A stretch of DNA of 64,000 nucleotides from Eutreptiella sp. 'Long Island Sound 2002' (Eukaryota > Protista > Euglenida): positions 196,664,001-196,728,000 of the forward strand of contig OZ038378.1 of the NCBI GenBank assembly GCA_964036045.1, written 5' to 3'. Numbering within the stretch: position 1 is the stretch's first letter; every line of letters starts with the position of its first letter. The notes under the pieces were generated by a model that had not been told where the DNA came from, made no database searches, and saw only the letters and a list, made by a program, of their open reading frames with translations. The translations under genes were made by a program, and so were the position numbers. Below are positions 1 to 35,859 of this stretch, piece after piece.

Positions 1-897
1 TAGTGCATCAAAAAGTTTGCACAAGTCCTCGTAATGTGCCTCGAAGTACTTCCGGAGCGTTTTTGGTTCCTGCTTTTGCTCAATTGTGAGCTTGCCCGGG
101 TCTATAACTTTCGAACCCGTTGATGACAAGATGTCATCAATATATGGGCGTGACTGCGGACAATTTCTTGTCACATACTGGACCATTTGTTGATAGGCAG
201 CGGGCCCCACCTTGACACCCATGGGAAGAACATTCCATTCGAAAATTCCGAACGGAGTGCAAAAAGCAGTGAGATGTTTGCTTTCTTCCTCGAGGTGCAT
301 CTGATGGAAGCCGTCTTCCAAATCAATGATAGTAAAAATGAAATTGCCTTGTTGGTTGGCAATTTGGTCCTCGATGACAGGCAAGGGGAAACTGTTGCCT
401 TTCAAGCAGGAATTTAGGTGGCGGTAATCAATAACCAAACGCCACTCGTTTTTCCCTGGTTTAGGGACCAGAAACGCTCTAGCCACCCACTGTGGCTGCC
501 CTTTGGCATCTCGAAGCATGCCTCGGTCTTTGAACTTCACAATCTTCTCCCATAACGCCTTTTCGCGTTCACCCACTGCCCGTATAGGCTTATCAGCCCT
601 TGGGCCTGCATGCTCAGGCAAAAGCTCCAATTTGAGCGTAGAATGTGGGCCTCTGGCCTTCTTTGCCTTTTCAGTAACATCCTGGGTGCGTATGGGTCTA
701 AAGACCGTGGCTTCATATCGGTTCATGAACTTCTCCTTCAGTTCTTCACAACCAGCCCAGTCTTCATCAGATTGGATTGCTGAACGGACGTATCGTCTAT
801 AACCTTGCGGCGGACTGTGTCTGGTGGTCTCTGCGGGCCCTAGAGTATTCCTATCCTGCCTAGTAGGGTTAATTACCGGGGGGTGAGTTACCGTGTG
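1..897 (-). CDS. pol: Pol segment 2: reverse transcriptase, 3'-partial (not in the ORF track because it runs off the window)
   Basis: Manual translation gives 299 stop-free codons in frame with segment 1 after the TGA: ...RSAIQSD...QWVARAFLVPKPGKNEWRLVIDYRHLN...DLEDGFHQM...EWNVLPMG...PYIDDIL (YIDD at 144-133). Confidence 0.93.
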
Positions 898-3800
898 TCA
901 CTTCTGCTGGACTGTGGACTCGTCTGATGATGAAAAAATCGGTCCCGGAGATAGTTCCGACTCTGACTGACTGGTATCTCCTTGTTGGGACTTCTTTTGA
1001 GCCTTATGAGCCTGTCTGACTGCCCTACGCCGTGCTTGGCGACTTATCTGCCTGTCTGGCTCATCCGAACTGTCACTGTCGTTGTGACAGTCGTGCAGAA
1101 GCGACTCTACCGATGGCTTGGGGTGTGGGTGTGATGTTGTGGTTTCGCCTTGGTTCGCGACCGCTCCTTCTGTATCGGAAGAGGACGTGAACGGCGACTC
1201 GGACTGTGACTCCTCTGGAGTCCACCCTAACGCATCTACTAATACCACCCGATAATCCCTATCTGCTGAGCATACTTTACCATACTTATCGACGAATAGT
1301 GGCTCACCTCTAGGCACCTCTATCCAATCTACCACTACCTCGCTCAGGGACCACCACCAATCCCTATCCTTACACGTAGGTACTATGGCTATGCCTTGGC
1401 CTTGTTCGAATTTCAATTTTTGGACCGTTTGCTCCCACAACTCATCCGGCGGATGTAGCCAGAGGTTTTCCCCTGACCAAGGCTGTGAGAGCCCGTCCTT
1501 GGTCTTATCCCAAAATTTGGGAAACCTGGCCAGGCGTTTACTACTAAACACGTCCGTGAAATCCTTGAAATGACCATCTGCCACCAGTGACTTGGCCCAC
1601 CGCTCGATGCGGTAAACTACGTCCTGTCGTACAGCCAAATCATCCCTATCCTCACGCCACTTTTGGCGGGCTTTACGTCTGGCTGACGCTCTGATTTGTA
1701 TCACGGTGCCTCGGCCCTTTTGGACCATAGTTGAGGACTTTGGGACGCCTCGGCTCTTTGATAGCGCATTTGTCTTCAAAACTTCGCTGGTGGAGACATC
1801 CAAACTGGGCCATGGTCCCGTTTCGGACTCAGATTGCTCCGAATCCGCCCACAGATCCAAGTCTGTAAACACCAGACCATCACACGCTACCGCCCTCAAC
1901 TCGGTATGCTCCTGAGCTGATTTTATACGAGCCTCACCCCAACCCGAAAGGGCTGGCCGAGGGATGGGCTCCGTGGCTAGGCTGGATGGCGCATCCAGTC
2001 CGGTAAGCGTGCCACCTGTGGTTTCAACCTCTACCAACTCCGGTCCAGTACCGGTAAACTCCGCATGTACGTCTGCGAGTAACGTGGAGGACCCAATATC
2101 CATATCATCACCCTTAACCGCTTCCGGCCGCCTTACCGGAATCAGGGCCTGGGTCTCCTGTACAGGTACCGGAGGATAACTATCCGTACCCACTAGACTG
2201 CCTCCGTCGGCTGAATCTACCCTACTGGGGATTCCTGGTCTATGAGGGAAGGCTGATACTAAGCATTTCGTCAAGCTACATACCAACCCCAACGCCTGGT
2301 GCACTGCAGAACCAATCTCTGGAGATTCCGGAGATCCCTGACTAGAGGGAACGTTGTATGCGGCCAATAAGCTGGAAATATAAGCGCATAACAGGAGGCA
2401 TTTCTCCCGCGCGCAAGTGAATGATTGCTTAGTTTGCGTAACGCCTGAAATATGTGCTCCTTCGGGTTGGGAGGGGGGGTGTGGCTTACCCGGGGAGGGG
2501 ATTACCTGATTACCTGGTATGTCTGTGGAACCGAAACCTCGCGAACCGCGTTCTGTGACTTGAAGTTCGGTTACCTCTTGAATCTCTGGAGTTAGATGAA
2601 GTTCGAGGGTTAATTGAGCGATCTTGTCTCCGATCCTTACCGTATGACCCTCGGAGTTCATATTAGTGAGTAATACGTCTACCTCGCCGGTGTAATCCGT
2701 GTCTATGACCCCGGCTCCGGTTCTGAGGAAGAGCTTAGCCGCGTTCCCTGACCTGTCTTGGACTTTGCCGTAAGTAAGTATGGGTGTTGTGAAGGCTAGT
2801 CCTGTGGGTACTCGTTTTTGACCCCGTGGCGGAATCTCGACTTCGACTGCGGCGTATAAGTCGTAACCCGCCGAGCCGAGAGTACCTTTGGTAGGTAAAA
2901 CGGACTCAGGCCTGAGCCGTTTCACCTGAAAGGGATGAGAAGAGATGTGTGTGGAGACTAACTCCATGAGGGAAGGAAACATACATGAAGAAGAGAAAGG
3001 TACGGAGGGGGAAAGGGAAGAAGTAATAGGTATAATATCTTGACTGGGTATGGTAGGGGTTTCTGGACGATATGGTTGTATGGGTAGAGAAGCGCGCCGC
3101 TTAGAGCGTGTGTAGTTGGCTTTTAGACTGTTGACGCCTAATGCTGCGCGTACTAAGCGTGCTTGCTCCTCCCCGTCGATGTCCGCGGGGAATACTGGGT
3201 TGACGGCCCGTCGTACCCCCTTCCTATGCTGTTGAATACCCCTACGTGCCCAATCAGGCACTGACTCGCCTGTGGCACTCTCGTGACAAAATATACAAAG
3301 ACCTGTAGTGCTAAGCTGAGAATCCCCTTGGAACACTAAGTGTGTTGGACGCCAGCACCTGGGCTGCATACACTCGGTCTGAACATAGCTAAGCGTCTCA
3401 CTGTTGAAGCTAACCGACGGAGTATCCCCAGATTCTGACGTCTTACCGGCTCTAGTGCGACCATCCTCATACTTAGAAGCCACCAAGCATGGATGCAACG
3501 GGACGTTCGAAGGGACCCATTTAAATACCCTTCTGGCTGCTTGGCCATAATGGGCCTCAATTTGGGCTCCGTCTACTCCCACTTCATCGGACAAGCCATG
3601 CTGGCCTTGCTTGCCATGCTGATATGCTGGCTTCCTATGCTTCAGAAAAATACCTACACTGACTAGGGTCTCCTTTCCGGGCACTACCGCTAACCCGTAC
3701 CTCAAAAGGAATGGAAACCCAATTATCAGCCTAGGTCCTATAGCGGCTACATGTATGAAGACTTGAACACACTTGTATACCTGCAACCCGTCAGGAGTCT

Positions 3801-4269
3801 CGGCCAATACCCGTACGGTGGCGATGACACCCTTACGGCCTCCTGACAGGGGTTTCCTGCCAACAGTAATGAGCTGCACAGGATTTGGTGCATCCAAAAG
3901 AGCCTCTTGTGGAAAAAGCTCTTCTCCAGCTAGGACCTCAATCTGGGCCCCAGTGTCAACCAAGGCCGGATGTTGTTTTTCGGGCAGATTGAGCTTGTCA
4001 CTGAGCTGGATACCTGCCGGGATCACCAACTCGATGATTTTGTTGGTGGACTTATTTTTAGACTTCACAGGATACCGGAGGACCTCGGTATCAGCCTCGT
4101 CCAATCCCACCGGCGAGATATGGACATTGTGCTTGGAAAGCACCGCACACATCTGGACAGCCCGCACTGTAGGCTTGTGACGACCCCGTTTGGTGGCCGT
4201 TGACGTGGGGCGTGGCTCCCGGGCGCTCCTGCCACAGCTGGGCTGTGACTTTGGTAGCGTGCCAGGCCC
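898..4269 (-). CDS. pol: Pol segment 1: aspartic protease, dUTPase and Dam-like adenine methyltransferase domain; same frame as gag
   Basis: My translation is stop-free from 4269 to TGA 900-898. LVDTGA has D at 3957-3955. dUTPase at ~2521-2930 has all five motifs (GSAGYDL, DRSG, GVIDTDYTGEV, IAQL, RGSRGFGST). MTase-like domain at ~1200-1620 (DVFSS...PWSGENLWLHPPD...IAIVP..W). Confidence 0.88.
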   Translation of the reverse strand, partial: GPGTLPKSQPSCGRSAREPRPTSTATKRGRHKPTVRAVQMCAVLSKHNVHISPVGLDEADTEVLRYPVKSKNKSTNKIIELVIPAGIQLSDKLNLPEKQHPALVDTGAQIEVLAGEELFPQEALLDAPNPVQLITVGRKPLSGGRKGVIATVRVLAETPDGLQVYKCVQVFIHVAAIGPRLIIGFPFLLRYGLAVVPGKETLVSVGIFLKHRKPAYQHGKQGQHGLSDEVGVDGAQIEAHYGQAARRVFKWVPSNVPLHPCLVASKYEDGRTRAGKTSESGDTPSVSFNSETLSYVQTECMQPRCWRPTHLVFQGDSQLSTTGLCIFCHESATGESVPDWARRGIQQHRKGVRRAVNPVFPADIDGEEQARLVRAALGVNSLKANYTRSKRRASLPIQPYRPETPTIPSQDIIPITSSLSPSVPFSSSCMFPSLMELVSTHISSHPFQVKRLRPESVLPTKGTLGSAGYDLYAAVEVEIPPRGQKRVPTGLAFTTPILTYGKVQDRSGNAAKLFLRTGAGVIDTDYTGEVDVLLTNMNSEGHTVRIGDKIAQLTLELHLTPEIQEVTELQVTERGSRGFGSTDIPGNQVIPSPGKPHPPSQPEGAHISGVTQTKQSFTCAREKCLLLCAYISSLLAAYNVPSSQGSPESPEIGSAVHQALGLVCSLTKCLVSAFPHRPGIPSRVDSADGGSLVGTDSYPPVPVQETQALIPVRRPEAVKGDDMDIGSSTLLADVHAEFTGTGPELVEVETTGGTLTGLDAPSSLATEPIPRPALSGWGEARIKSAQEHTELRAVACDGLVFTDLDLWADSEQSESETGPWPSLDVSTSEVLKTNALSKSRGVPKSSTMVQKGRGTVIQIRASARRKARQKWREDRDDLAVRQDVVYRIERWAKSLVADGHFKDFTDVFSSKRLARFPKFWDKTKDGLSQPWSGENLWLHPPDELWEQTVQKLKFEQGQGIAIVPTCKDRDWWWSLSEVVVDWIEVPRGEPLFVDKYGKVCSADRDYRVVLVDALGWTPEESQSESPFTSSSDTEGAVANQGETTTSHPHPKPSVESLLHDCHNDSDSSDEPDRQISRQARRRAVRQAHKAQKKSQQGDTSQSESELSPGPIFSSSDESTVQQK

Positions 4270-7200: not shown

Positions 7201-8856
7201 AGACTCGTGACATATCTCCTCGACGCGACGTTTTACCTCTAAAACCTCACGCCTGACATCACCCTGGACTTTTTGGACTGCCCTTTCGACCTCACCCACC
7301 TGGTTCTGGGCACTCGCGCGCGCTTCGTTTGCTTGGTCGGCGGCGGCTCGTGCCGCCAACGCCTCAGTTCGCGCGGCTTGCGCCTCGCGGATGGCGTCGT
7401 TGACGAGCTGCTCGAGTTCGTCGTTGCGCCGCCTTGCCCGCGCCGCGTCCTCCTTGGCTTGCTGCGCCGCCGCCGCGGTTTGCTGCAGCTCCTGCTGGAG
7501 CCGCGTCACCGCGGTGTCGTTGGTCTCGGTGGCGCGGGCGGCGGTCGCCTCGGCGCGTCGGGCTGCGGCTGCGGCCTCCTCGATGTTTTCGTTCGCGCGG
7601 GCGGCGGTCGCCTCGGCGCGTCGTGCTGCCGCTGCAGCCTCCTCGGCGTTGGTGGCGGCGGCTTGGGCGCTTGCGGCGGCTCGGTTGGCCGCTTGCGTCG
7701 CCCCCGCGGCCTCGGCGGCGGCGGCGGACGCCTTCGCCCGGGCACCCTCGGCGGTTGCCGTCGCGGCGTCGGCCTTTTGGGCGCCTCCGTCGGCGGCTCG
7801 TCGTACTGACTCAATCTCCACCTGGAGAGAGTCCAGCACGGCCCGCGTTCCACGCAGGACTTCGCCCGCCTGCACGGCGGAGCGCACGTCGTTGGCGATG
7901 GACTTCACCTCGTGCTGCAACGCGGTCACGGCGACGGAGCTGGCTGCGAGGTGTTGCGGGGCCGGACGTTCGTCAAAGGTGATCTCGAGGGCCTCCACGC
8001 GGTTTTGCAGCCCACCGATGGCTGCACTGTGGGCCGCGGTGTCCTGTTGGCGCGCCCGGGCCTGGGCGTCGGCGCTTTTGTGCGCCGCCGTTGCCCTTGC
8101 GCTCGCGCCCGCGGCCTTGGCTGCCGCTTGCTCGGCCGCCGTGGCAGCCCGGGTCGCCTCGTCGTGCGCCCCGGCTGCTGTTTTCTCTGTTTCGGTCACC
8201 CGGTTTACCGCGCGCTCTGTTGTTTCTTCTAACTCACGCACACGACGAGCGGACCGAGAGACTTGACCCCTAAGGCGTGTGAAGGCGACACCTAAACCAT
8301 TGACGTCCGCCCTAATACCGCCTAAGACTCCGTCCTCATTTTGAGGTTTTTCCACCGAAAATACGGCACTAGATGCCATGGGATCCTCTTGCTCACGGCC
8401 CTCAGATGGTCCCAATGGATCTGGGGAGGGGCCTTCTTGAGCCTTCCCAATGTGCCGAATGACCCTCTTCACAAGGGCTTTAAATGTCTGAGGTGGCATA
8501 AAAGAGCTCACCTCAGGGGTCCCATCCTCTGTCCTAAGGCGCTTACCGGACCTAGTGGCTATACCACTATAGACCTCTATGTCATCCTTGGTCCCCTTAC
8601 CCTTATCTTGACCGTAACTTATCCTACGGGACAAGGGAGGAGAGGAAGGAGAGGACCGAGACCTTCCCTTGTGTCTTGGGGCTGAGGCGGACTGGGGGGA
8701 GTGCTTCCCAAGCTTCCGTAAGATTGGGGGGGAAACTTTGGGGTGGCGAATTGATTCGATGCCACCAGCATCCTCCAGTCCAGCCCCAAGAAGGGAACCA
8801 GAACTGCTACCAAGTAATACGGTTGGTGGTGACCGTATTATTTCCTCGGTATCCAT
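4270..8856 (-). CDS. gag: Gag polyprotein (~1528 aa): long Ala/Glu-rich coiled coil, capsid-like region, two CCHC zinc knuckles
   Basis: ORF 4270..8874, with first ATG (MDTEE) at 8856. Capsid-like PLWDGDQKTLEDW; knuckles CRICGQRGHYHRDC and CRKCGKKGHWASEC. Ends in TAG at 4272-4270. Confidence 0.9.
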   Translation of the reverse strand: MDTEEIIRSPPTVLLGSSSGSLLGAGLEDAGGIESIRHPKVSPPILRKLGKHSPQSASAPRHKGRSRSSPSSPPLSRRISYGQDKGKGTKDDIEVYSGIATRSGKRLRTEDGTPEVSSFMPPQTFKALVKRVIRHIGKAQEGPSPDPLGPSEGREQEDPMASSAVFSVEKPQNEDGVLGGIRADVNGLGVAFTRLRGQVSRSARRVRELEETTERAVNRVTETEKTAAGAHDEATRAATAAEQAAAKAAGASARATAAHKSADAQARARQQDTAAHSAAIGGLQNRVEALEITFDERPAPQHLAASSVAVTALQHEVKSIANDVRSAVQAGEVLRGTRAVLDSLQVEIESVRRAADGGAQKADAATATAEGARAKASAAAAEAAGATQAANRAAASAQAAATNAEEAAAAARRAEATAARANENIEEAAAAARRAEATAARATETNDTAVTRLQQELQQTAAAAQQAKEDAARARRRNDELEQLVNDAIREAQAARTEALAARAAADQANEARASAQNQVGEVERAVQKVQGDVRREVLEVKRRVEEICHESSVTRVRVEALASDSEKSFPPIVAKTSENAGQNSQFAEILQSAQQCILEAQNEANGAKSEANRAQVEAQGAQRIQLATETMLDRARPEIEDAVGRSEAAVLTIQGTSGLVDQRIKFFEELAAKCTKETYAALDKLKTSQSSGPSAPPPPGSGGSVPHLEAEIRKVQDMAEACRLHAGNAMRSTQEALGSQTAAHENAVAAAQAAAGMSRVDTQVAGPSSHTCTAQFTPELQVQIELLNPQMKEMNNALQLAINNVADMATDKFASVSARVQDFEVSLLGKLGSPENGGPRLGDLDLDIRAHSDQLTRIWEQLEMQNHDLDLYLETLRDMEKKGAQNEPERQQNSRSEGPRDSRANPQPTSRRTGGETGPWYDDRRSERSDGSRRSRSRDRPRHDVPHWRTRRRESLESDRSGRSRLLRRRDSEHLHDDLGDLPSPPAWWKKGPWGPLPGCHGVRGDVRWFQIAPYMNGAYFAPGKAYRANKMADGLGAEQDEILPGKNKIQPTGIAGDMAFREARPPLKFKDFKRVPLDAVAAASERCFGEHKNSWLDPTIREALEKTAKVPLWDGDQKTLEDWSQKMLRWRKDHAFRFDDKQQANILIAAVNNKGEQDRIYKAYHREDMSTDELWRYVAGRVMGDINRPETVWRKRTIPDVVLTSRIWTDWMADWIEEGAGIPYGVTIPEATTVMMTLLKEHCKQVPQDKDAQRAYHKIYSVQADYGGVELNYLEIFLLVLPFIQTREYKERKEEHILSCQGAETKKVRAFGDHKGGSGGDRHHSRSRDDYRRSGGGKSHGSSSGGHKSPAGGRDSVTSTSSFATTVSRQSGRSEHMQKSRHERENCRICGQRGHYHRDCPERKKGKDQKQEHRSRSGSKAKPDDICRKCGKKGHWASECRERSRSKEQPRSRSLSQGKHPGGDQRSNSKGRPRDGNDRPRSREGSGNGRPGSNGSQRRSYEPHKDRSKSRSPGRGDQHRRTSKTQ

Positions 8857-8874
8857 TTCAGAAAAATAAAACAA

Positions 8875-10430
8875 TCCAAAAATATTTGACTATTTATGGA
8901 AGCACTTTTCCTTTATAGGAACCAAGGGCACAGGATCAATGTTTTACCACCAAAAAGAAAACCTCTTGCAGAGTTTTATGAAAAAAATGTGCCCTATGCT
9001 TGTGGATGGGGGTGGGGATTCCTCGAAGACCTTCAGCCCCAAGACACAAGGCAAATGCACAATGCAAATGAATGACGTGTTGGTCGTGGGTTGGGAGTCC
9101 TTGAGTGCTGAGTTACCTTGAACCTTGAACTCACAACCTCGATGAACTTGAGTAGAGTTGATCACGACCTCACGACCTCATGATGCAACGTGGACAATGG
9201 AGGTCCTATGAAGAGACATCCACAACAATAAGAGAATGAAATCAATGGGGAGAGAGTGGGGAAAGCACACGACCCATACACGGTTTACACCACCAAACCA
9301 TTGGAGCTTGACAAAGGTTGAGGGGTGTACATCACTACCATATGATGGAAAAACTGATTGGGAATGACATCATGAAAATCTCAATATCTTCATACCCGTG
9401 AGTGGGGAAGAGAGCACAACACACACACAATGCACATGCAACATGGAGCAATTGCTCCTAGAAAGGCGGCTCTCAACTCACTATAGGCTTGGAGATATCT
9501 TGAGTCCAAATACATGCTTGCAAATGCATCGTAATGAAAATGGCTCAAGTTTATGTCCAAATGACAACATTATTTGGAATTGATCACCAAGCATGAGTGG
9601 AGTTGAAATGAACTACCAACAATAAATGTTGCCCATAATCCAATGTTAATGTAGTGCAAAGCATATGTGTCAACTCCTAAAAGACTAAGAGATATGACCT
9701 TGCCATTATGGTGCACAATGGACAAAACGGGGAAAATGTCCATTTGCTTGGTAGTGTATCTCCAAGCCTAAGGGGAGTGGGGATGGTTCATGATACATGG
9801 GAGTCAAGCATAGTCCCATGTTGATGCACAATCAATTGCCTATCCCAACTCGACATGGGTTTGGAGATATAAAAATGGATTGGAAAATCGAAATCAAGGA
9901 ATGAATTCTTTGGCGTAGTTGGGGTATGCAACACCCATCCCATTCTCTTGAATCCCAATTGAGGCGTTCACAAGCCTCAATCACTTATGAGGAGAGGAGA
10001 ACCATCCTTTACCTCATCATAGTCATGTATGGCCATGTTGACCTTGGAATGAACTTTTTCATGGAGAATGGAGTCGGCATTAGTTTGGAATGATTAGGCA
10101 TGGACCAAGTCAACAACAAGACCAACATAACACATATTGTTCGAAGAAGCTTCATCAATGAATTCGACACTCAATTTGGTCCAAGGCGGTTTCGACCCAA
10201 ACCGGCCGGGACCTGTCGGAATCCCTAGCAAATCTCGATCTTTTTGATATAAAAAAATGATCGAGATCTGTCCTATTGAAAAAGCTTTTGAAATCCCCAA
10301 AACTTGAAGACGCCACCGCTGACGGCGCCCGGCGATCCCGATCGCCGCGTCCGGCATTCCAAATCTCAGATTTTAAAAAATTCTGAGATTCTTTGATCAA
10401 AATTACCCTCCGAAGCCCGATTTCATTACA
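8875..10430 (-). repeat. Putative 5' LTR plus leader of E1 (inner LTR boundary and PBS not identified)
   Basis: Non-coding and AT-rich, upstream of gag, with a TG terminus at 10430 and several hairpins at 10232-10390. The second LTR is outside the window, so this cannot be confirmed by repeat identity. Confidence 0.55.
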
Positions 10431-22420: not shown

Positions 22421-22451
22421 TCGAGGAGGTCGATGACGCCCTGAGCTGCGG

Positions 22452-27000: not shown

Positions 27001-27841
27001 GCAGACGCAACACAACAAACCGCGCAGGCACACCGGTGAACAGGAGCCAAGTGGCCCGGGACACCGCACACGCAACACGACACACCCAGCGGGCGCACCG
27101 GTGAACGGGAGCCAATTGGCCCAGGACACTGCACACACAACACAGCACACCGAGCGAGCACACCGGTGAACAGGAGCCAAGTGGCCCAGGACACCGCAGA
27201 CGCAACACAGCAAACCGCGCGGGCACGCCGCCGAACAGGAGCCAAGCGGCCCAGGACACTGCACACACGTAGGGCGGCCGAGGGACACGAAAGAACCAAC
27301 ACCCCATGGGTCGGACGCACTGGGGCAACCCAGCCGACCCACCGGGCCAGTGGCAGGAGTGGTACTCCAAGGCCACTGGTCCGAGCCCGGCCAGGCTGCA
27401 TCGGGGACCATGGCAAACGTCACCCGGAGCCATGGAAGCAACCGGTGACAGGAGAGCCGGTACACAGTCCAGGAGGGGGTCGCCTGCCAAGCAGAGTGGC
27501 CCCGCAACTCAAGCCACAAGGGTGAGGCGGTCGTACCGTAGACTAGTGGGAGCAATACCCCTTGTGGTGAGAGATACTCCACACGGCTGGGCAGCCCCCA
27601 GAGCTGCCGCCCAAAACAGGGGGCATGTGGCCCTACCCATGGACACATGTGGGGACACCCTCCCACCCGGGACACATGGACCGGGTGGCCGCGACAATGC
27701 CTTCCCAAGCACATGCGGGAGCGGCTCAAGAGGCACCTGACGTAGGGCAGTGGGAGGGACAGGACGTCCCCTTGGTAAGACCTTCTTCCTGCAATGTCAA
27801 AGGAGGCATCCCGAGTTCCCGAAGATACCTACCTACCTACC
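24064..27841 (+). mobile_element. 5'-truncated copy Y of the X-family LINE (3' 3.8 kb), ending in (TACC)4
   Basis: Reverse complement of 10632-14388 at high identity, plus ~90 bp of extra terminus and a tail at 27826-27841. Flanked by 142-bp direct repeats, with cggc microhomology at the 5' junction. Confidence 0.92.
26605..27270. repeat. 65-bp minisatellite in Y (inverted relative to 11120-11850)
   Basis: Unit caccggtgaacaggagccaagtggcccaggacaccgcacacgcaacac..., about 10 copies. Confidence 0.9.
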
Positions 27842-27983
27842 TCCTCTGAGACCCATGGTAGTCGTTCTGGTGACGCCTTCGCTGACGTTCTCGGAACCTT
27901 TGCCATTTGTCTTCCTCTCCGGCGCTGCGACTCCTCACCTGGTATCTCGGACTACCTGTTTCCTCCTTTGCATTGTGCTCGGC
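27842..27983 (+). repeat. Right copy of the 142-bp target-site duplication flanking Y
   Basis: Starts immediately after the (TACC)4 tail and matches 23926-24067. Confidence 0.9.
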
Positions 27984-28868
27984 GCATTTGTGAGCCCTTG
28001 GCGTCGCATCCTCCCTTGCACTGGGCCTTTGTTCGCTGATGTGTTCGGGTGCGTTGACTTAGCTGTCACTGCAAACAGGGCCAAAGGATGATGTGCGAGA
28101 CAGCCGACCTGTTCTCTGCCCCAACAGAGGCGGCTCGACCGCCTAAGATGTCGCACATAGTTGTATGTCCTCCAAACTCCTCTGCAACAAAGGTGATACC
28201 TCACATTTTCTTGAAAGCTCCTGCAGCCGGCTTTTCCCCAGATGTAGCGGTCTCCAAATCCCACGTTAATCCTTGAGCAAGCGACGCACTTCACGGCGAT
28301 GCCGTTCCCATTCGGCAGTCGCCTCGCAATACCTCTCAGTAATTTTTTTGGTTATCTCCACGAGCCCGTGCAATCTCTGATTCACGCTGTCAGTTGCGGC
28401 CCTCAGCCTCACTTTTTGATCTTCATGCTGCTGCTGCTCGGCGAGCTTTGTAGCCTTTTCAACATTTACCTGTACACGTTCGCGAACAACCTGTCATCTC
28501 AGTTGAACACCCAGCTCGATATGCGAACCCTGTAGCAGCTCCAATAAATCCTGCCCCTCCTGGCAAAGAATCACAGACCTATCTCCTATCTCACGATCCT
28601 CCAAAATCTCCAAGACACATTGAAACTGGGTCTCCAGGCGCTTTTCGGCGATTCTCCTGCTGCGCTCATTGTCGCCCTTGTCAGTGATACTCCTGTAGCG
28701 ATGATTGAGGCTCCCGTCGGCGATACTCTTGCTGAGCACACATTCGCACGCAGGTTCTTCACTGTAAAAGCGACGCCGGCTTGGTGCCCTGGACCCAGAC
28801 CTCGCGTGGCTGAGCTCTCTGTTGTTCGACCGTGAGCGGCTTGAACGCGACAAGGTTTCTCTTGGCAT
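27984..28868 (-). pseudogene. Degenerate coiled-coil ORF of Z (gag-like by position only); continues at 23925-23750 across the Y insertion
   Basis: MPRETLSRSSRSRS...IAEKRLETQFQCVLEIL...LR*QVVRERVQVNVEKATKLAEQQQHEDQKVRLRAATDSVNQRL...LLKD*, with in-frame stops and no CCHC seen. Confidence 0.45.
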
Positions 28869-29130
28869 ATTGCACTAACACTTCACTCCCCAGGGCAATT
28901 AGTAACACCCTCCGTGGACTGTACGCAACGGTAAGCAATTAGACCGAAATTGCTCTGCAATTTTGGTCTGTAAAACCTGCAATTTCACGTAATCTCACCA
29001 CTAACTTTATTATCTCCACCTGATTTCTTGACCAAATCCTTGCTGAGCACGTGAGAATCCAAATTTTACAATCCACGAAGTGACAACCCAATATCCCAGC
29101 ACGTATACTAAATCCAGTGAGTATTCTCGA

Positions 29131-29501
29131 TGTAGTCTTCAATCTCAAAGGTGCTGCGATGTCAGTGGGTTCTTGTCTGGTGGTCTAATTGCAAACCTGC
29201 AATTTGGACACTCACCACAAAATCTGTAGAACATGGAATGAAAAGATTGCAATACTATTCTACATCCCGTCACACCTGCACCTTCTGTCCTCTCCTTAAT
29301 CAGTGGTCGTCATTGACTGCAACTGTGCTCTATTCTACATCGCCTGCGCCTGTGACTGTCACTGTTACCTCGCACTCCACTGCGCACTCTACAACTTATA
29401 TGCGTGCTCCAGTGCACTCTACAAGCGCTCTGCCTGGCAAATTTATATTACCCGAGTGGCACATTGCCTTCAACATTTCACATATGCCCAAACCCATTGC
29501 A
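29131..29501 (-). repeat. 5' LTR of Z
   Basis: TGCA...TACA termini on the minus strand; direct repeat of 22909-23274. No canonical tRNA PBS was recognised. Confidence 0.7.
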
Positions 29502-32500
29502 GTGACCCCTTCTCACCGGCCGGGTTCATCAATCTGCCAGCATCATGAGTGGCTGTTACAGGTTGCCCTGGATGAGGTTGATGGACAGGGAGGGGGTGAA
29601 CTGGAGGTGCGTGCTTCTGATTTGAAAATCCTGAGGCTCTCTGAGTGGGCTGTACTTCCAACAAGGGGGACGCCTGGTGCAGCAGGACTTGATTTATCCG
29701 CTGCAGAATCGGTGGTCATAGATCCATGGAGTCGCAAATTGGTGCGTACAGACCTGGCTATTTCCACACCTCTTGCAACCTACGCCAGAGTGGCCCCTAG
29801 GTCCGGAATGAGTTTGAAGAACAGCATTGATATTGCCGCAGGTGTCATTGACCATGATTACCGTGGGAATTTGGGTATCATACTTGTAAATAATAGTTCT
29901 GTGCCTTTCTCTGTGAAGGTACATGATCATGTAGCCCAGTTGATAGTGGAGCGTGTTTGTATGAGTAATGTGGTGGAAGTGCAGTCATTGCCACCCACTG
30001 AAAGATCTGGACAGGGCTTTGGAAGCACTGGAGTGGGTGCACATCCCTGCCGGTCTGGAGACAGACAATGTTGTAGTCACCAAGGGGGGTGTTGTTGTGC
30101 GTCCGTAGCGAGGGCATTAACTACTGATAAACTAGGTCCGCTACAGGACGTATCCCTCCCTGGTGATGAAGCCGCCTTTGAGGTGTCTATGCCCACGTGT
30201 GTCAATGCTGTACTTGGGTATGACTCTGATTTTGAGTCCCAGGGTCTGTCTGACGTTGAGTCAGAAGGTTGCAATGAGCAGCCTGTTCCTGATTGTTTTG
30301 CGGGAGGCTGGGGGTAAAACCGGGATACCGATCAGGATGTTGTTGACGGCGTCCACCCTGAACACCATACCCCTGAGACATACATCCCCCCCAAAGGTTG
30401 TGAGCCGTCTGCAATGCATCAGGTTGACACTTTTCCTCACATGCGTGGGATGCGTCAGTTCTCCTCCTCACCGTTGCAGCGAAGACTGTCGAGAAAAACT
30501 GCAGGGGTGATGTGGCGAAGGGGAAAGTACAGTCTCACACCATCTGTATTCTCGTCCATTGTGGAGTGGGCTGGGGAGTTAGCAACAGTTGATGTATTTA
30601 GTACAGCACAGCCTATGCAGAAGTCTGTTCGTAAATGCTGGGGCCCCAGACCTTTCGATAGGTCCTGGGCTGATCAGTTTGTATATGTCCATCCCCCGTT
30701 CGGTAAGTACCGTCAGGTGGTTGAGAAAATACTGATTGACCAGGCCAGAGGCTTGGCTATAGTGCCTGTTGCCAAAACAGAGCCCTGGTTTTGGGCACTC
30801 GGTGAGATTGCAGTTGACTGGTGGGACCTACCCAGTGATTGGAAAATATTCCAGGACCCATCAGGTCGACAGTTTTCGCAGCGAGGAGCCTATACCACTA
30901 GTGTATTGTTATTCAATGCCCCTTCCAGCTCTGAGTATGCGTGGGGTGATACTGCGTCTGGGGTCGTTGATGATGTGTCTCCTGTTGGGGAGCGCACTGC
31001 CAAATTGCAATCTGTGTTTGTAGGTTCGCCGGGTAAGACTCCTATCAATATCCGGAACCGAACCATAAGATCTGTGATTGAGTCTGACATGGAACATCCA
31101 GACTGTGCCAGGTATCGTGAGTTATTAGAACAAGAATTTGCGGATGTTTTTCAGTTTAAAGCCATTATTCAGGAGGATCCTGATGATCTGAAGTTGCGAG
31201 GTGATTACGGTGTTTGTCATATTGAGCTCGTTGAAGGTGCCGCACCAAAGGCGGTCACGCCGTATAGGTGTGTAGGAGTTCGGGCTGCGGCTTTTAAAGC
31301 CCTAATTGAAAAGTTTCAGGGGCGTGGCATGTTGCGTACAGCCAGGGAAAAAAATCCGCAGTGGGTTTCAAGGGCATTTGTAGTTCCTAAGCCGGGGGGA
31401 AAGTGGCGGTCAATCATAGACTACCGTCACCTTAACTCCCAAATTAAGGATCTGCATTTCCCCCTGCCCAATATTGAGGATCGTCTGGTGGAGGAGGGGA
31501 AAAATGTCCTGTGGACAATTTTTGATTTCGAAGATGGCTTCCATCAAATGCCACTTTCCGAAGAGTCAAAGAGCTTTTATGACTCCTTAGGGGGTATTTG
31601 AATGGGAGGTTCTTCCCATGGGGCTTAAGACTGCTCCGGCAGTGTATCAGAGAATGGTAGACTGGTGCCTATCCCAAGATCCAGATATCAGGGCTCGTCC
31701 CTATATCGATGATATTCTGGAGGGGACCAGAGGTAATGAACAGGGTCAAATTGATGGCTCAGTTCTGCACCACCATTATGAGTTGCTCCGAAAAATTTTC
31801 ACATGCCTTCGTAAATACAAGCTCATTGTTAAACGTGACAAGTGTCATATGTTTATGACACGTGTTAAGTTTTGTGGCCATGTTTTGGAGGCCGGAACCC
31901 GAAGAGCAGCCCCCAGTAAAACGGAACCCATTGACCGATGGTCATGGGAATACATCCGAACCCCCACCCAGATGAAGGCCTTTTTGGGCCTCACTCAGTG
32001 GTATTCCATCTACATGCCCAATTATTCACATCACGCAGCCATCGTGAGTGATGCGCTTGCGGGCATGGAGAGTAACACTAGGGCAAGTAAGCGTAAAGTT
32101 CAGCACACGAAAATAAAGTGGACAGAGGAGATGAAGGAGGCTTTCAAAGCCATCAAGCTTCTCATGCGTGATTCTGCAGTATTGCAGATACCTTACCCCG
32201 CAAAAGAATTTCTGATTCGCACAGATGCATCTAAACATGCAGTTGGTGCATCCCTAGAGCAGGCGGATGGGAACGGTGACTATCGTCCAGTAGCCTTTTT
32301 CAGCCGCAAGCTCCAGGGCAGGGACAATCTTGGCCAGCGAGCGTGGTCTACCAGAGAGAAGGAGACCTACGCGCTGATAGGGGCCTTGCAGAAATTCAGG
32401 GCATGGATTTAGTCCACGGTATTGGTGCGGTGTCTCACTGACAACCAGGCACTGATTTCCTGGTTGTATGAGGATTGGGGTACAATTAGTGTCCCCGTGG

Positions 32501-35200
32501 GCACGAGAGGGCGCTGGCACGAATTTTTGTCCCAGTTTAAAAACTAGTTGAGTATACTCTTGGTAAGGGACATATAGTGCCAGACACGCTTAGCCACTGG
32601 GCTTACCCAGCGTGCGAACATGCAGGGGATTGCACAATGCAGGGTTCTGTAGAAGATGCTGCGGGAGTCGCAGCGGATGAGCAGGAATCACGTCGGTGGG
32701 AGGACCAGCAGTTAGCTGCACATGTTTTACGTCGCCTGAGGGAGGAGAGGGCAGAACTGGGACGATTGCGCTCAGTTCGTGTCTCTTTCGAGTCGTATCA
32801 GGCAGTACAGACTGAAGGTGCTGCCAGAGACCTGTCCTTCGTTGAAGAGAGATTACGGAAAATGTGTTCTGAACTTGTTCCCGATGAAGATACAGTAATG
32901 GATAAAGGGAATGTACGTGCACAGGGTATTTTGCAACACATGCAGCATCAGCACTGGGGTTTACAGGCAGCCTGTTGGCCAGCCAGAATTAGTGGTGTGT
33001 CCACCAGGTCAACGACCCGCGAGAACGGAATCAGTTCTTTGGCTGCAGGTGAAGCTCATCAGGTGTCAGGTGGACATATGCAATTGCCTCAGCAAGCTGC
33101 AGGTGATGCTGAACAAGCTGTGCATGTGTCTCAGATTCCCCGAAATTCCGGTGATACTTTTGTCCTTTTCGCAGACTGGACAGAAGCATGTAAAGCAGAC
33201 GAACATCTGAAGGAGCTGTACGAATATCTCAGTGCAGGTAATTCACGCGCAGGTTTTGGGTTGTATCGTTGAAAGATTAGGAATAATGGGAAGATCTTGG
33301 TGCCCACCAGCTTGGTGGACATGGTTGTCAAGGCGATGCACAGCTTTGCGCTTCCAAGGGTCAGCAAATTAAAGGAGCTTTGTCTCCGGAAGTTCGCATT
33401 CCCTGAAGACCTGGACGCTCACATTCAGGCGCTTATTGCTGGCTGTGCCACCTGTGCAACGTGCAAAGCACGCAATCATCCCTCTCCAGATACCATGGAA
33501 CATTACCCCATACCAGAGTACCCCTTCTCGTCATTAGCTATGGATTTCACCAAGTTACCGCTAGTCTCTGTAGGTGATGAGAAGTTTGATTATGCCTTTG
33601 TTATCGTCGACCGACTAACAGGATACACCATGGCTATTCCATGTTAGGAAAAGGGCCTAAATGCTGAAAAGGTGGCTTCACTGTTTTTGGAGAAATGTGT
33701 TTTTTTTACAGGATTGCCGCATGAAATTATGTCCGACAATGACAAAGTCATTTCAAAAGACTTTTTCGAAACCCTCTGTGCTCTGAGTGGAATTGAGCAG
33801 CACAAGGGTGTCATTTACCGCCCTCAGTCCAATGGCAGGGCTGAAGTGGCTGTTAAACTGGTGGTCAACGGTTTAAGGCGGTATCTGGCGGATCGGAAGG
33901 GTAATTGGGTGCATGCATTGCCTTTGGCATTGTGGAGCCTCAATGACCTCCCGGGGGTGGTGTTCCCCTACTCCCCCCATAGGTTAGTCTTTGGGAGGGA
34001 CCCGGTTGGGTTTGGGGATTGCCCCCCCTATGAGGTTGAGGAGGGTCACGAAGATGCACTGGAGTTCTTTGACCGGGTCAGCAAGGAACGCCAGTTGGTT
34101 CAACAGCGGCTGACCAAAATTCATGAGCGAGAGAAGCGAGCTTGGTTGAAAAAACATCCACAGTTACAGCTGCAGGTTGGTGATCGAGTGTGGGTCAGGT
34201 TCTTGCCCAATGAAGCTGGTGTTCACAAGCTTCACAGGTTGTAGTTCGGACCCTGTGAGGTGCTGCAGTGCCTCAGTGAAACACGTTTTCTGATTTCGAC
34301 GCCCAAGGGTGAGCAGATCTTGCCTGCCACGAGACTGAAGCCCTACGTGTCCCCCTTCAAAGGACAGCCCATGCCGTTTCATTATTTTGTAGATGGTGAC
34401 AGTGTGCCTCAGGATGATTCATACACTGTTGAGGCTGTGACGGGCTGTATATGGCAGGGTTCAGGGCGAAACCGGAAGCGCAAGTGGAAGGTGAAGTGGC
34501 GTGGACATGAGGAAGAAACTTGGGAGACACAGGATAAGTTTGTGGAACATGTTAATGATGTGTGGGTCAAATATAACAGGGATCATGGCATCAATATCTC
34601 TGTTAATGATTTGATTCGCACCATACAATGTGTGCCCCTGTGTTTGCTGCTGTGATGGTGTTTTCTCAATTCTCACTTCCTTGTGTTTTCAGGACCGATT
34701 TCAGTTTAAGAAGATGAACCAGAAGCAGAATTTAATTAATTTCTCACGTCCTGAGTTCTGCATGGCAGGGCCTGGCCAGATTTGTCATGGATCATTGGTG
34801 TCTGTTTTCTTTTGCCTGATTTTCTCTATGTTTGCATGATTTTAGTTGTCCCCATCCAAGGTTTCCCTTGTGGAATTTGCAGATACTGAATATGCAGATA
34901 GTGGTGGCATTTTGTTGCACGCTGTAAGATATCGTGCGGCATACTGTGATGTACTGCATTGTATTTGTATTTGTATTGAGCCCATTTCTGCTGCCTTATG
35001 TTTTCTACACACCAGACTGCCCAATTATCGTCAGTCACCCCAGATTTGATTTTCCTGAGGATTGCCTAGCCTAGGAGGGGGGTGCAGCAGGTCTGGTCAC
35101 GTGTGCAGATGGAGAGGATCCTAATCTGTTGCGATTATTTCAGTTTGCACAGACGATTGTGCCTTTTGCTATGATGCTCAATCGGGATTGTGTTGCAGTC
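29502..35200 (+). mobile_element. Decayed Ty3/Gypsy (chromovirus-like) element E2: dUTPase - MTase-like - RT - RNase H - integrase - chromodomain - PPT - LTR start; 5' half displaced by Z
   Basis: dUTPase at ~29620-30040 (GAAGLDL, RSG, GVIDHDY, GFGST). MTase-like at ~30500-30920 (DVFST...SWADQFVYVHPPF). RT (DFEDGFHQM, YIDD at 31702); RH (RTDASKHAVGA, REKETYAL); IN (H..C..C, MDF, SDN, PQSNGRAE). Chromodomain at ~34410-34580. PPT aggagggggg at 35073-35082 is followed by TG at 35083. Several stops and frameshifts; right boundary uncertain. Confidence 0.9.
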
Positions 35201-35205
35201 CATGA

Positions 35206-35859
35206 TTATTGATTTATTCTCTTGCACAGGCTCCTGTTATCACTTTCTGATGAAAATGCAGTACAATTCCAGCTTTGATGCTCTGCAGTGATACTCGTGC
35301 AGTTGTCCTCAATCTTACGAGCTGTGTCATACATTTCCTGTAACACAATGAGGTCACACTTTGGAACCTTACAACGAGTCAGCCAACTAGATTCACGGAT
35401 TGCGGCAGTGGCCACAATGTCCAACTTGGTCTTCATGGTGTGAAAAATATCGTAAAACTCCTTTTCAGCCTCATGAAACTCAGGCGGAAAGAGGGATTGT
35501 CGGGGTTGAGCAGCAACAGGAAGTGGGTCAGAATCAGGGTGAACAACGTCGTAGTACTGAGCATCTGCGAGCTTAACCAAATCTGACACCTCTGCTTGCA
35601 ATTCTACAAACCAAGCCCCTAAATCCTTACTTGCTCTATGCAAGGCATAATCCTTGTGGAAAGCCCTTTGCCTTGAGGATCCCTCCACCCAGTAATGACA
35701 AGCATCGTAAAGTTTCCAAAGCCGCTGGCTGAACAAATTGGGGTCCGAACTTGGTTCTTCACTCTTGGGCATGAGCAAATGCTTCTTAGGCCTGGGTGGA
35801 AGCTCACAACCAAGTGGGATAGGCTTGGGAGCGCTGGTGACCTTGAGGAACTTTAACAT
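35206..35859 (-). CDS. Hypothetical protein (~217 aa), probably a host gene; the C-terminus may be affected by an intron or by the adjacent LTR
   Basis: Part of ORF 35206..35961. The ATG at 35859 is preceded by ttttttttgtag|ctctaat, an acceptor-like T-tract plus AG. Globular-looking composition; no family recognised. Confidence 0.55.
   Translation of the reverse strand: MLKFLKVTSAPKPIPLGCELPPRPKKHLLMPKSEEPSSDPNLFSQRLWKLYDACHYWVEGSSRQRAFHKDYALHRASKDLGAWFVELQAEVSDLVKLADAQYYDVVHPDSDPLPVAAQPRQSLFPPEFHEAEKEFYDIFHTMKTKLDIVATAAIRESSWLTRCKVPKCDLIVLQEMYDTARKIEDNCTSITAEHQSWNCTAFSSESDNRSLCKRINQ

Follow-up and report, generated by a model that had tools for sequence, protein, structure and literature searches.

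A 5′-truncated Ty3/Gypsy-like retrotransposon with a dUTPase, a chromodomain and a divergent DAM-like domain bearing histidine at the catalytic motif

Introduction

There is current interest in retrotransposons that bring chromatin or epigenetic tools of their own, and the Euglena gracilis genome is one of the showcases. The retrotransposon DAM family was described first from DIRS elements and, in 2026, from LTR elements, when a May preprint reported DAM-carrying, chromodomain-bearing LTR retrotransposons, including those of E. gracilis, using a DAM HMM at E<1e-5 and finding Asn-Pro-Pro to be almost universal (bioRxiv 10.64898/2026.05.21.726589). The DNA analyzed here (the window) is a stretch of 64,000 nucleotides from contig OZ038378.1 of assembly GCA_964036045.1, deposited as Eutreptiella sp. 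'Long Island Sound 2002'. The Euglena spliced-leader 24-mer occurs 5458 times in this genome, compared with 0 occurrences of a control, which led the analysis to treat the host as a Euglena. Two retrotransposons in the window, E1 and E2, encode a dUTPase and a methyltransferase-like (MT-like) domain ahead of the reverse transcriptase (RT), which raises the question of what kind of element carries this pair and whether the MT-like domain could still mark DNA. We consider it probable (roughly 0.8) that window positions 29500-35301 represent a dead, 5′-truncated copy of a Ty3/Gypsy, chromovirus-like family with a dUTPase and a divergent DAM-like domain, the latter no longer a canonical enzyme.

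Structure of E2 and its genomic copies

The first-pass annotation had read a dUTPase, an MT-like domain, RT, RNase H, a DDE integrase and a chromodomain in E2, and all of these were found at 29500-35301, in a broken frame. The features, in window coordinates, are as follows.

29136..29501, no strand given: flanking repeated segment outside E2, 97% identical to window 22909-23274
29500..35301, + strand: E2, 5′-truncated, mutated Ty3/Gypsy-like LTR retrotransposon copy, to which genomic copies align at 94-98%
~29622..30035, + strand: dUTPase (PF00692, 118.8 bits, E=1.7e-34, cut-off 22)
29709..29984, + strand: 276 bp (92 codons, dUTPase motifs 2-4) present in the window copy; in-frame deletion in a young E2 subfamily (alignment to L009)
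30315-30317, + strand: copy-specific TAA between dUTPase and MT-like domain; the intact copy reads TAC
30456..30956, + strand: MT-like domain, divergent retrotransposon DAM domain
30588-30599, + strand: VDVF of the MT-like domain (sequence)
30690..30701, + strand: HPPF of the MT-like domain, placed by alignments at the catalytic NPPF/NPPY motif IV
31383..31884, + strand: reverse transcriptase (RVT_1)
near 31571, + strand: 8-bp deletion inside RT (alignment to intact copy)
32119..32538, + strand: RNase H (RT_RNaseH_2 and RT_RNaseH)
32410-32412, + strand: in-frame stop in RNase H (alignment to intact copy)
near 32542, + strand: 1-bp deletion at the RNase H end (alignment to intact copy)
33270-33272, + strand: in-frame stop near the integrase (alignment to intact copy)
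33300..33824, + strand: integrase with an H2C2 zinc finger and a DDE core, placed in the window from the Integrase_H2C2 and rve matches of the intact copy
33645-33647, + strand: in-frame stop within the integrase (alignment to intact copy)
~34410..34592, + strand: C-terminal chromodomain (small profile against solved chromodomains)
35083..35301, + strand: 3′ LTR, TG...CA, with polypurine tract (PPT) AGGAGGGGGG just before it (genomic copies)

Genomic E2 copies matched positions 1501-7302 of a query spanning window 28000-36000 at 94-98% identity, and the sequence upstream of 29500 had no match in any of them. The element begins at about 29500; ORF 29151-30317 opens with ~117 residues foreign to it, and the flank at 29136-29501 is joined in frame to E2 by chance. 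The window copy is without 5′ LTR, gag and protease, retaining only the PPT and the 3′ LTR of the LTR-element hallmarks; an E2 LTR pair was absent from the window, and the LTRs were defined from genomic copies. Relative to the intact copy L009, its lesions comprise the 8-bp deletion, the 1-bp deletion and five in-frame stops. The dUTPase, MT-like domain and RT had been described as sharing one ORF; ORF 30414-31601 does hold the MT-like domain and the first part of RT, but the dUTPase, although in the same frame, is cut off by the TAA at 30315-30317. The window copy sits amid a nest of LINE-related repeats.

Intact genomic E2 copies measure about 10.3 kb and are bounded by LTRs of 219 bp and a 5-bp target duplication; PBS and PPT are both present. 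In the full-length reference copy on C18, the LTRs are identical at 218/219 positions (99.5%) with TG..CA ends, the target duplication is GAACC, the PBS TGGTAGCAG... follows the 5′ LTR, and the PPT given above precedes the 3′ LTR. The intact layout consists of a gag (ORF1, 1103 aa) with a coiled coil and CCHC knuckles, a single in-frame stop, and an ORF2 of 1985 aa encoding protease, dUTPase, MT-like domain, RT, RNase H, integrase and chromodomain. On this ORF, Pfam returned RVT_1, RT_RNaseH_2, RT_RNaseH, Integrase_H2C2 and rve, in that order. The protease is predicted from a DTGA motif (DTG in E1), with no Pfam protease match, and a DNMT domain was not seen in the E2 polyprotein. The LTRs, target duplication, PBS and PPT, together with a pol order of protease, RT, RNase H and an integrase with H2C2 and DDE parts, place the family in Ty3/Gypsy (Metaviridae). 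Pfam found no tyrosine recombinase or phage-type integrase on the complete E1 and E2 polyproteins, and classification of E2 as a DIRS element was ruled out by H2C2 and rve, direct LTRs and the target duplication.

A chromodomain C-terminal to the integrase, as in chromoviruses, is supported by a small profile: built from E1, E2 and two relatives, it matched the solved chromodomains of ZMET2, CDY, HP1 and CBX5 at E=1e-7 to 1e-4. The single-sequence Pfam Chromo match of E2 was weak (E=0.26), while one relative, P0151, passed Pfam Chromo at 27.2 bits. E2 has His at the third aromatic-cage position of this domain.

That E2 could be a chimera of separate insertions, with the dUTPase or the MT-like domain foreign to the RT-integrase-chromodomain part, or an assembly artefact, was suggested by the truncation of the window copy within its repeat nest and by the possibility of nested insertions raised for Euglena (bioRxiv 10.64898/2026.05.21.726589). 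However, the same unbroken 5.8 kb recurs in more than 20 genomic copies, several of which have an uninterrupted 1985-aa ORF between near-identical LTRs and show a target duplication; the family is also present, at ~96% identity, in a second assembly (ENA ERZ25074135). We regard a chimera, named at the outset as a refuting outcome, as scarcely credible, because intact full-length LTR copies keep the whole layout.

Comparison of E1 and E2

E1 follows the same plan as E2 on the opposite strand, but with 1617-bp LTRs.

8814..10430, − strand: 5′ LTR of 1617 bp; its 3′ counterpart beyond the window shares 99.6% identity
4270..8874, − strand: gag of ~1534 aa that contains CCHC knuckles and a long coiled-coil stretch (sequence)
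898..4167, − strand: first part of pol (protease, dUTPase, MT-like domain), stopping at a copy-specific TGA at 898-900
3946-3960, − strand: protease motif DTG
2518-2931, − strand: dUTPase, within pol
1150-1752, − strand: MT-like domain (PF05869, E=0.014)
1444-1455, − strand: HPPD at the motif IV position
1..795, − strand: start of RT; E1 runs past the window into RNase H, integrase and chromodomain

E2 had been considered the element that ties the MT-like domain to an integrase; this role is not needed, as E1 itself extends beyond the window into an integrase and a chromodomain. The two elements are, as first read, clearly diverged (identity of 43% in the dUTPase, 29% in the MT-like domain and 46% in RT) yet alike in domain order and in the HPP motif, which continues as HPPD in E1 and HPPF in E2. 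Every comparison in the analysis used natural copies.

The dUTPase and its linkage to the MT-like domain

In the window copy of E2, all five trimeric-dUTPase motifs are readable (AGLDL, PRSG, GVIDHDYRG, VAQL and RSGQGFGSTG). The 92-codon in-frame dUTPase deletion is found in the youngest E2 copies (99.2-99.6% identity to the reference copy); its signature of split matches (1501-1711 and 1981-7302) was present in at least 10 genomic copies. Since these young, expanded copies are without motifs 2-4, E2 can do without the dUTPase over short periods at least. A copy on C23 has a complete dUTPase and showed no LTR pair within 17.6 kb; among the copies examined, no full-length one had an intact dUTPase.

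Across the genome, dUTPase and MT-like matches share one open frame in at least nine diverged families, namely E1 and its 78%, 74%, 48% and 41% relatives, E2 and its 62% and 51% relatives, and L058, a linkage that outside E1 and E2 is read from match coordinates and open-frame lengths. Three decayed copies of the clade that carries His at motif IV (L056, L057 and L059) had no dUTPase within 5 kb upstream, and the dUTPase as a marker of the whole clade was left unconfirmed by these loci.

Sequence and family of the MT-like domain

Sequence comparison places the MT-like domain in the retrotransposon DAM family, as a divergent member. The E2 domain had no PF05869 match in a single-sequence Pfam search even at E<=10; that of E1 scored 15.5 bits (E=0.014), and ten relatives with His ranged from 0 to 24.2 bits, all under the gathering threshold of 28.1 bits. 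The connection to the family is provided by L049-type domains of the same genome, which also lie upstream of RT, pass PF05869 at 42 bits and share 37-40% identity with the E2 domain (E ~1e-27 to 1e-30). A profile search recovered 2960 relatives; of 79 that were aligned, 60 match PF05869 (E<=1e-3). The consensus obtained, VDAFAS...W...LW.NPPF...VP.W...WF, corresponds to the DIRS-type pattern.

Both elements depart from the (N/D)PP(Y/F/W) form of motif IV, with HPPF kept in 10/10 E2 copies and HPPD in 29 of 30 E1 copies. In the best 150 of the 2960 relatives, the motif opens with N in 95 cases, with H in 25 and with C in 12. The E1 and E2 domains fall in one clade of 15 rows (SH-aLRT 95), all with His by HMM alignment, in a midpoint-rooted tree from a quick search whose branches carry only SH-aLRT support and of whose rows many are fragments from one assembly. 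Where the aromatic residue would follow HPP, most members of this clade, E1 included, have D, N, H, E, P, K or I; E2 retains Pro-Pro-Phe after the His.

Predicted structure of the MT-like domain

An initial AF2 model based on five aligned rows was discarded (pLDDT 60). The model retained has a pLDDT of 92.5 and shows a domain of ~150 aa, built around a five-strand core and bearing His at the key position, predicted to be a class I, adenine-N6 methyltransferase fold. It was closest to adenine-N6 methyltransferases, including PCIF1/CAPAM (Z=10.3 over 132 residues, rmsd 3.5; Foldseek probability 1.0), T4 Dam (8.4), E. coli Dam (8.2) and M.TaqI (7.7). Sequence searches of solved structures, either with the single domain or with the 79-row profile, returned nothing relevant.

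The best match being an mRNA cap-specific adenosine methyltransferase, the domain might act on RNA, either methylating adenosine at N6 or simply binding the RNA, with the transcript of the element or the RNA:DNA hybrid as its target. The rRNA adenine methyltransferases Erm and KsgA, at Z ~8.5, likewise score slightly above Dam, and the domain is directly N-terminal to RT in the polyprotein. Nevertheless, Z values of 8-10 are unspecific for a Rossmann-type fold, the sequence homology is to DNA Dam (PF05869), and the motif IV problem is the same as for a DNA methyltransferase, so we find an RNA substrate improbable.

Selection on the MT-like domain

For variants shared by at least two copies, omega of the MT-like domain was 0.23 in E1 (11 nonsynonymous and 13 synonymous, p=5e-4) and 0.15 in E2 (2 nonsynonymous to 4 synonymous), these counts being small, especially the 6 events of E2; the corresponding RT values were 0.20 and 0.16. 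Singleton variants gave an omega of ~0.5-1.2 per individual segment. Purifying selection on the domain is estimated to be about as strong as on RT, because of which the domain appears to be retained as a requirement of the element. Neutral evolution, set out beforehand as a refuting result, was not seen in the variants shared between copies.

The domain could also be a neutral and dispensable passenger, or a relic of a DIRS-derived capture; the decayed catalytic motif and the deletion of the adjoining dUTPase without halting amplification would agree with this. Against it stand the RT-like omega of shared variants, the retention of eight near-invariant columns across families just 29-40% identical while the flanking linkers are unalignable, and the absence of an MT-deleted subfamily among the copies examined, and we disfavor this explanation strongly. 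The proposal of an old, selected cassette thus receives partial support: the domain order is a genuine trait of complete LTR elements, the dUTPase-MT pairing recurs and the MT-like domain is under selection, but the dUTPase is partly deleted in the youngest E2 copies.

Possible function of the MT-like domain

The first-pass annotation had called the domain a DNA-marking enzyme, and the preprint proposes a related model, in which an active DNA adenine-N6 methyltransferase places 6mA on the cDNA or the integrated copy, which then resembles active host chromatin. The DAM-family origin and adenine-N6 methyltransferase fold, the purifying selection and the intact Pro-Pro-Phe of E2 are consistent with such activity, as is the report that 6mA-methylated insertions in E. 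gracilis are more frequent among DAM-LTRs than among other LTRs (bioRxiv 10.64898/2026.05.21.726589). However, His replaces the catalytic Asn/Asp in the whole clade, and the base-stacking aromatic is lost in most members, being Asp in E1. In addition, half of the catalytic domain of prokaryotes is reported to be missing from eukaryotic DAM domains, and representatives with the canonical NPP produced no 6mA in E. coli (bioRxiv 10.64898/2026.05.21.726589). Since members of the His clade score under the Pfam cut-off, they were probably neither counted nor measured in the preprint. Active DNA methylation by E1 or E2 therefore seems unlikely to us, and the DNA-marking claim was not upheld. From its sequence, the domain is most likely no longer a canonical adenine-N6 methyltransferase, with residual or altered methyltransferase activity possible; His could conceivably still support catalysis.

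In our preferred reading, the methyltransferase-fold module would bind nucleic acid or a cofactor in the replication complex, the neighboring dUTPase would exclude uracil from the cDNA, and the chromodomain would direct integration. A bolder reading, which we rate as less likely than not, is that the large His clade comprises a pseudo-methyltransferase, or an enzyme of new chemistry, fixed with the dUTPase as a two-part module for cDNA handling. If this is true, many DAM-carrying LTR elements in this genome write no 6mA, the model of mimicking host 6mA chromatin fails for His-clade elements, and the conserved role of DAM in DIRS and LTR elements is different from DNA marking. A clade in which the defining residue of adenine-N6 methyltransferases is replaced while selection persists, and which is paired with a dUTPase, offers a concrete test of whether retrotransposon DAM domains methylate DNA or serve another role. 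Moreover, a standard Pfam screen overlooks a whole clade of DAM-like domains in this genome. For annotation, the analysis provides full-length reference copies, boundaries and a lesion list for two families.

Comparison with known systems

Among cellular and phage enzymes, PCIF1/CAPAM, T4 Dam and EcoDam resemble the predicted model of the element domain in their class I fold (Z 8-10) and in the position of motif IV, but they have NPPF or DPPY and complete SAM pockets, in contrast to the His of the element domain. The retroviral dUTPases of non-primate lentiviruses and betaretroviruses are, like those of E1 and E2, trimeric dUTPases inside pol; they differ in position and partner domains and do not belong to chromodomain elements. 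Retroviral dUTPase is presumed to limit uracil in cDNA. A closer parallel in layout is found in the fungal dUTPase chromoviruses (PosPlaTy3-5 and relatives), chromodomain Gypsy elements whose dUTPase lies between protease and RT, although they have no DAM domain and inhabit another host kingdom; separate elements were judged to have gained their dUTPase independently (Novikova et al. 2010, PMC2864245).

Regarding the MT-like domain, DIRS1-type elements carry the same 'methyltransferase' domain family as E1 and E2 (Goodwin and Poulter; Piednoel et al. 2011, PMC3266345). They possess a tyrosine recombinase, split or inverted repeats and the domain after RT and RNase H, whereas E1 and E2 encode a DDE integrase, are flanked by direct LTRs and a target duplication, and carry the domain before RT. 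The DAM-LTRs of the preprint, for which E. gracilis is a many-copy host, are Ty3/Gypsy-like LTR elements like E1 and E2, some with a chromodomain, with a DIRS-type DAM in pol and a compact methyltransferase fold. They almost universally carry Asn-Pro-Pro, in contrast to the His-Pro-Pro of the E1/E2 clade with its 0-24 bits on PF05869 (cut-off 28.1). The first-pass survey had asked whether the architecture was already described: the combination of DAM and chromodomain in LTR elements was, while dUTPase goes unmentioned in the text and supplement legends of the preprint (bioRxiv 10.64898/2026.05.21.726589). A literature search on dUTPase in Euglena retrotransposons yielded nothing relevant. The His-for-Asn variant and its pairing with a dUTPase seem to be new beyond the 2026 preprint; E1 and E2 appear to be elements of the known DAM-LTR kind, to which the His variant and the recurrent dUTPase partnership are additions.

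Structure of the E2 Family

The window copy of the Gypsy-type family E2, when the three forward frames of 28500-34700 were read, followed a single reading frame interrupted by stops and two frameshifts. It encodes, in order, a dUTPase, a methyltransferase-like domain (MT; quoted in the first-pass annotation as …TVDVFST…VYVHPPFGKYRQVVEKIL…GLAIVPVAKTEPWFWAL…), a reverse transcriptase (RT), RNase H, a stretch of about 240 residues, an integrase (IN) and a C-terminal chromodomain-like segment. All the domains claimed for E2 in that annotation were therefore present, as judged by frame reading and, for several of them, by Pfam, although the MT-like segment and the chromodomain gave no Pfam match in this first scan of the window frames.

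Pfam matches of the E2 window copy
dUTPase: PF00692, 118.8 bits
RT: RVT_1
RNase H: RT_RNaseH_2 and RT_RNaseH
Integrase: Integrase_H2C2, weak match

Lacking the 5' LTR, gag and protease, the window copy is a dead element fragment, and LINE-related insertions and rearrangements form a nest around it.

Features of the E2 region (window positions)
29500-35301, plus strand: E2 copy
30315, 32410, 33270, 33645, 34242: stops
Near 31571: 8-bp deletion
Near 32542: 1-bp deletion
29136-29501: segment just 5' of E2, outside the element, 97% identical to 22909-23274
10629-14398 and 24053-27756; 22449-23274 versus 27382-29501: large inverted and direct duplications, 92-97% identity
26572-27351: GC-rich 65-bp tandem repeats

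Because 29136-29501 lies outside E2, the first ~117 residues of the previously annotated ORF 29151-30317 are flank, fused in frame by chance. The 5' truncation abuts one duplicated repeat, with a 2-bp microhomology (CA). In the genome at large, the Euglena gracilis spliced-leader 24-mer occurred at 5458 sites, compared with 0 for the reversed control, which, taken with the genome size, indicates E. gracilis or a near relative as host. These >5000 sites are dispersed on both strands across chromosomes and not solely in tandem SL-RNA arrays, which suggests either that many trans-spliced mRNAs were retroposed or that SL genes are scattered.

With window 28000-36000 as query, the genome from which the window comes (2.28 Gb in 2317 contigs) yielded more than 20 E2 copies of 94-98% identity, all starting at window 29500 and ending at 35301; other copies extend further 5', and one, on contig C18, is complete. 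Its 219-bp LTRs agree at 218/219 positions and have TG…CA ends, and the 5-bp target site GAACC is duplicated; a PBS (TGGTAGCAG…) comes after the 5' LTR, and ahead of the 3' LTR lies a polypurine tract. Its 1103-aa ORF1 has an extended coiled coil and three knuckles of CCHC type. After a single in-frame stop comes a 1985-aa ORF2 that contains a protease motif (DTGA), what is left of a dUTPase, the MT-like domain, RT (RVT_1), RNase H, integrase (H2C2 and rve) and, at its end, a chromodomain-like segment. The complete copy, with its LTRs and target duplication, and the shared ends of the other copies refute a chimera of separate insertions, an outcome that the first-pass annotation had envisaged; E2 is a genuine, continuous LTR retrotransposon family of ~10.3 kb. 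In a second assembly (ENA ERZ25074135), an E2 copy (L055:2131-10293) is split by a ~7 kb insertion between dUTPase and MT.

Structure of the E1 Family and Shared Features

The second family, E1, occupies the minus strand at the window start, where gag is followed by a 1089-aa ORF (898-4167) containing a protease, a dUTPase and an MT-like domain carrying HPPD; its RT starts at 795 and continues past the window edge. With the adjoining 9 kb, the whole element measures 17.7 kb, with 1617-bp LTRs of 99.6% identity and a third ORF segment that encodes RT, RNase H and integrase (H2C2, rve) and has a C-terminus resembling a chromodomain. E1 by itself therefore ties MT to integrase, and E2, on which the earlier reading had placed this link, is unnecessary for it. 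The two families share PBS and PPT motifs, and the earlier description of them as diverged, with the same domain order and HPP, agrees with identities of 43% (dUTPase), 29% (MT) and 46% (RT) and with HPPD in E1 versus HPPF in E2.

Window 898-900 (minus strand) is an in-frame TGA between MT and RT found in this E1 copy only. Since this site is CGA (Arg) in 27/30 family copies, many with an uninterrupted 2434-aa pol ORF, a programmed second readthrough was rejected in favor of a CpG-type mutation. Outside the window (L017:3314-5967, minus strand), ~2.65 kb separate the pol ORF end from the 3' LTR; in this copy the stretch contained no ORF above about 115 aa, and it could be a decayed extra gene.

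In both families, a single in-frame stop marks the gag-pol boundary (E2 L015:1595-4903, L009:227-229; E1 window 4168-4272), including six young E2 copies with open frames from locus position 230/231; this is consistent with readthrough expression, the copies being too alike to prove conservation. The gag proteins are unusually large (~1534 aa in E1, window 4270-8874, minus strand; 1103 aa in E2, L015:1595-4903), and their N-terminal parts, a long Ala/Glu-rich coiled coil ahead of the CCHC knuckles, gave no Pfam match. At the other end of the polyprotein, a profile of five C-termini (E2 twice, E1, the metagenomic protein P0151 and one Pfam-positive relative) matched solved chromodomains, including ZMET2, CDY, HP1, CBX5 and MPP8 (E 1e-7 to 1e-4). 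Three aromatic-cage positions are kept in E1 (Y, Y, F), and the third is His in E2.

Identity of the MT Domain

Run as single sequences against PF05869 (Dam; cut-off 28.1 bits), the E1 MT reached 15.5 bits and the E2 MT gave no score. PF05869 itself matched the genome 93 times, and several of these loci, such as C8:59953310-59953780, were also matched by the E2 MT (38-41% identity, E about 1e-26 to 1e-27). Of these elements, L049 and L050 carry a 42-bit Dam domain ~190 residues upstream of RVT_1 in a single ORF, with motif IV region LW(M/I)NAPF, compared to VYVHPPF in E2 and LWLHPPD in E1. A profile of the three MT types (E2, E1, L049) retrieved 2960 relatives at E<=1e-3 from 1.84 billion representative proteins. 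The 79-row alignment (76 near-complete matches plus the three domains), 60 rows of which matched PF05869 individually, has the consensus VDAFAS…W…LW.NPPF…VV.KI…VP.W…WF and gave a confident AlphaFold2 model (pLDDT 92.5), whose best structural matches were adenine-N6 methyltransferases.

Structural matches to the MT model
PCIF1/CAPAM: Z 10.3
ErmC' and KsgA: Z about 8.5
T4 Dam: Z 8.4
E. coli Dam: Z 8.2
M.TaqI: Z 7.7

MT thus belongs to the retrotransposon DAM family, and "MTase-like" was a correct label, given these matches and the PF05869-positive relatives.

The His Clade

Of the 150 best among the 2960 relatives, 95 begin motif IV with Asn, 25 with His and 12 with Cys. A quick maximum-likelihood tree placed E1 and E2 together with every other strongly related His form in one 15-row clade (SH-aLRT 95), sister to Asn-type Euglena and metagenome elements; one row labelled Asn in the tree reads His in the HMM alignment. 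His is fixed inside families (HPPF in 10/10 E2 copies, HPPD in 29/30 E1 copies). At the fourth position of motif IV, where an aromatic residue usually stacks on the target adenine, members of this clade have F, D, N, H, E, P, K or I. Ten representatives scored 0-24 bits on PF05869, every one below the cut-off. All those traced lie on Mb-size ENA contigs, and the five located belong to one assembly, ERZ25074135. Since E2 is present there at about 96% identity, this assembly is from the same organism or one very closely related. Another non-canonical group carries Cys for Asn (CPPF/CPPL; P0021, P0024, P0026, P0029, P0040, P0042), and one label change suffices for its six members in the tree (weak support).

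The replacement of Asn by His, together with the frequent loss of the aromatic residue, indicates that the function of MT is probably not canonical adenine-N6 methylation. An active DNA 6mA writer is accordingly doubtful, and a role directed at RNA is less probable still. A non-catalytic or altered role is favored from the motif, with a probability of roughly 0.5.

Linkage to dUTPase

The E2 window-copy dUTPase retains all five motifs. When the genome was scanned with PF00692 and the E1 dUTPase and coordinates were compared with MT matches, a dUTPase lay 0.5-1.4 kb upstream of MT, in the same open frame, in the following elements.

Elements with dUTPase and MT in one open frame
E1: 2434 aa
E1 relatives, MT identity 78%, 74%, 48%, 41%: 2466, 2448, 2463, 2540 aa
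E2 relatives, MT identity 62%, 51%: 2114, 2132 aa
L058, HPTI-type element: same open frame

MT/dUTPase identities per pair (74/83, 78/73, 48/54, 41/49 and 29/43%) reveal similar divergence rates. No dUTPase was seen in the L049 family (Asn type) or in the metagenomic polyproteins P0151, P0036 and P0094, all of which have Dam-RT-RH-IN; P0151 additionally has Chromo. The E2 reference copy L009 and six copies 99.2-99.6% identical to it bear an in-frame 92-codon dUTPase deletion that removes motifs 2-4, and the copies retaining dUTPase are older (95-98%). dUTPase is not indispensable to E2, at least over short periods.

Selection on MT

Natural copies only were used, and variable codons were divided into shared variants (>=2 copies), taken as arisen in propagating lineages, and singletons, taken as mostly post-insertion.

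Omega and N:S of shared variants
E1 (30 copies), MT: 0.23; 11:13 (p=5e-4 vs neutrality)
E1, RT: 0.20; 17:23
E1, dUTPase: 0.38; 10:9
E2 (10 copies), MT: 0.15; 2:4
E2, RT: 0.16; 3:5
E2, IN: 0.07; 3:13
E2, MT-RT linker: 0.91; 6:2

Singleton omegas were 0.5-1.3 by segment in E1 and 0.45-1.2 in E2 (0.72 and 0.81 over the whole region). Between families, where MT is 25-40% identical, eight of its columns stay almost invariant, and the flanking linkers are unalignable. The shared-variant counts are small and agree with this between-family conservation; at codon level, they show purifying selection on MT, in line with the proposed comparison of MT against linker, and leave little room for a neutral relic. 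The idea of a selected cassette therefore held for the dUTPase-MT linkage across families and for MT constraint, but not for dUTPase as an obligatory component, given the deletion in young E2 copies.

In a working model, gag-pol would be made by passing the single in-frame stop, dUTPase would reduce dUTP around reverse transcription, the chromodomain may steer integration, and the DAM-like domain would supply a function required by the element.

Comparison with Known Elements

A bioRxiv study (May 2026, 10.64898/2026.05.21.726589) described DAM domains in LTR elements of Ty3/Gypsy-like type, some bearing a chromodomain and some not. It screened by HMM at E<1e-5, derived DAM-LTR domains from DIRS elements and included a "Euglena DAM-LTR/DIRS group" as well as DNMT-carrying Euglena elements. 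There, Asn-Pro-Pro is almost universal, eukaryotic DAM is without half of the prokaryotic catalytic domain, and representative domains gave no 6mA in E. coli. The metagenome protein P0101 (JGI/IMG, 1114 aa), a Copia-like rve-Dam-RVT_2 with DAM between integrase and RT, agrees with the "Chloro-Ochrophyta DAM-LTR" layout of that study. Its text and supplement legends do not mention dUTPase, and our literature search turned up none that reports dUTPase from elements of Euglena; fungal chromodomain-bearing Gypsy elements have dUTPase between PR and RT (PMC2864245). Because of these two reports, the core architecture, including DAM-LTR with chromodomain, is already known. What the present analysis adds is a clade with His in motif IV that Pfam hardly detects and that recurrently pairs with dUTPase.
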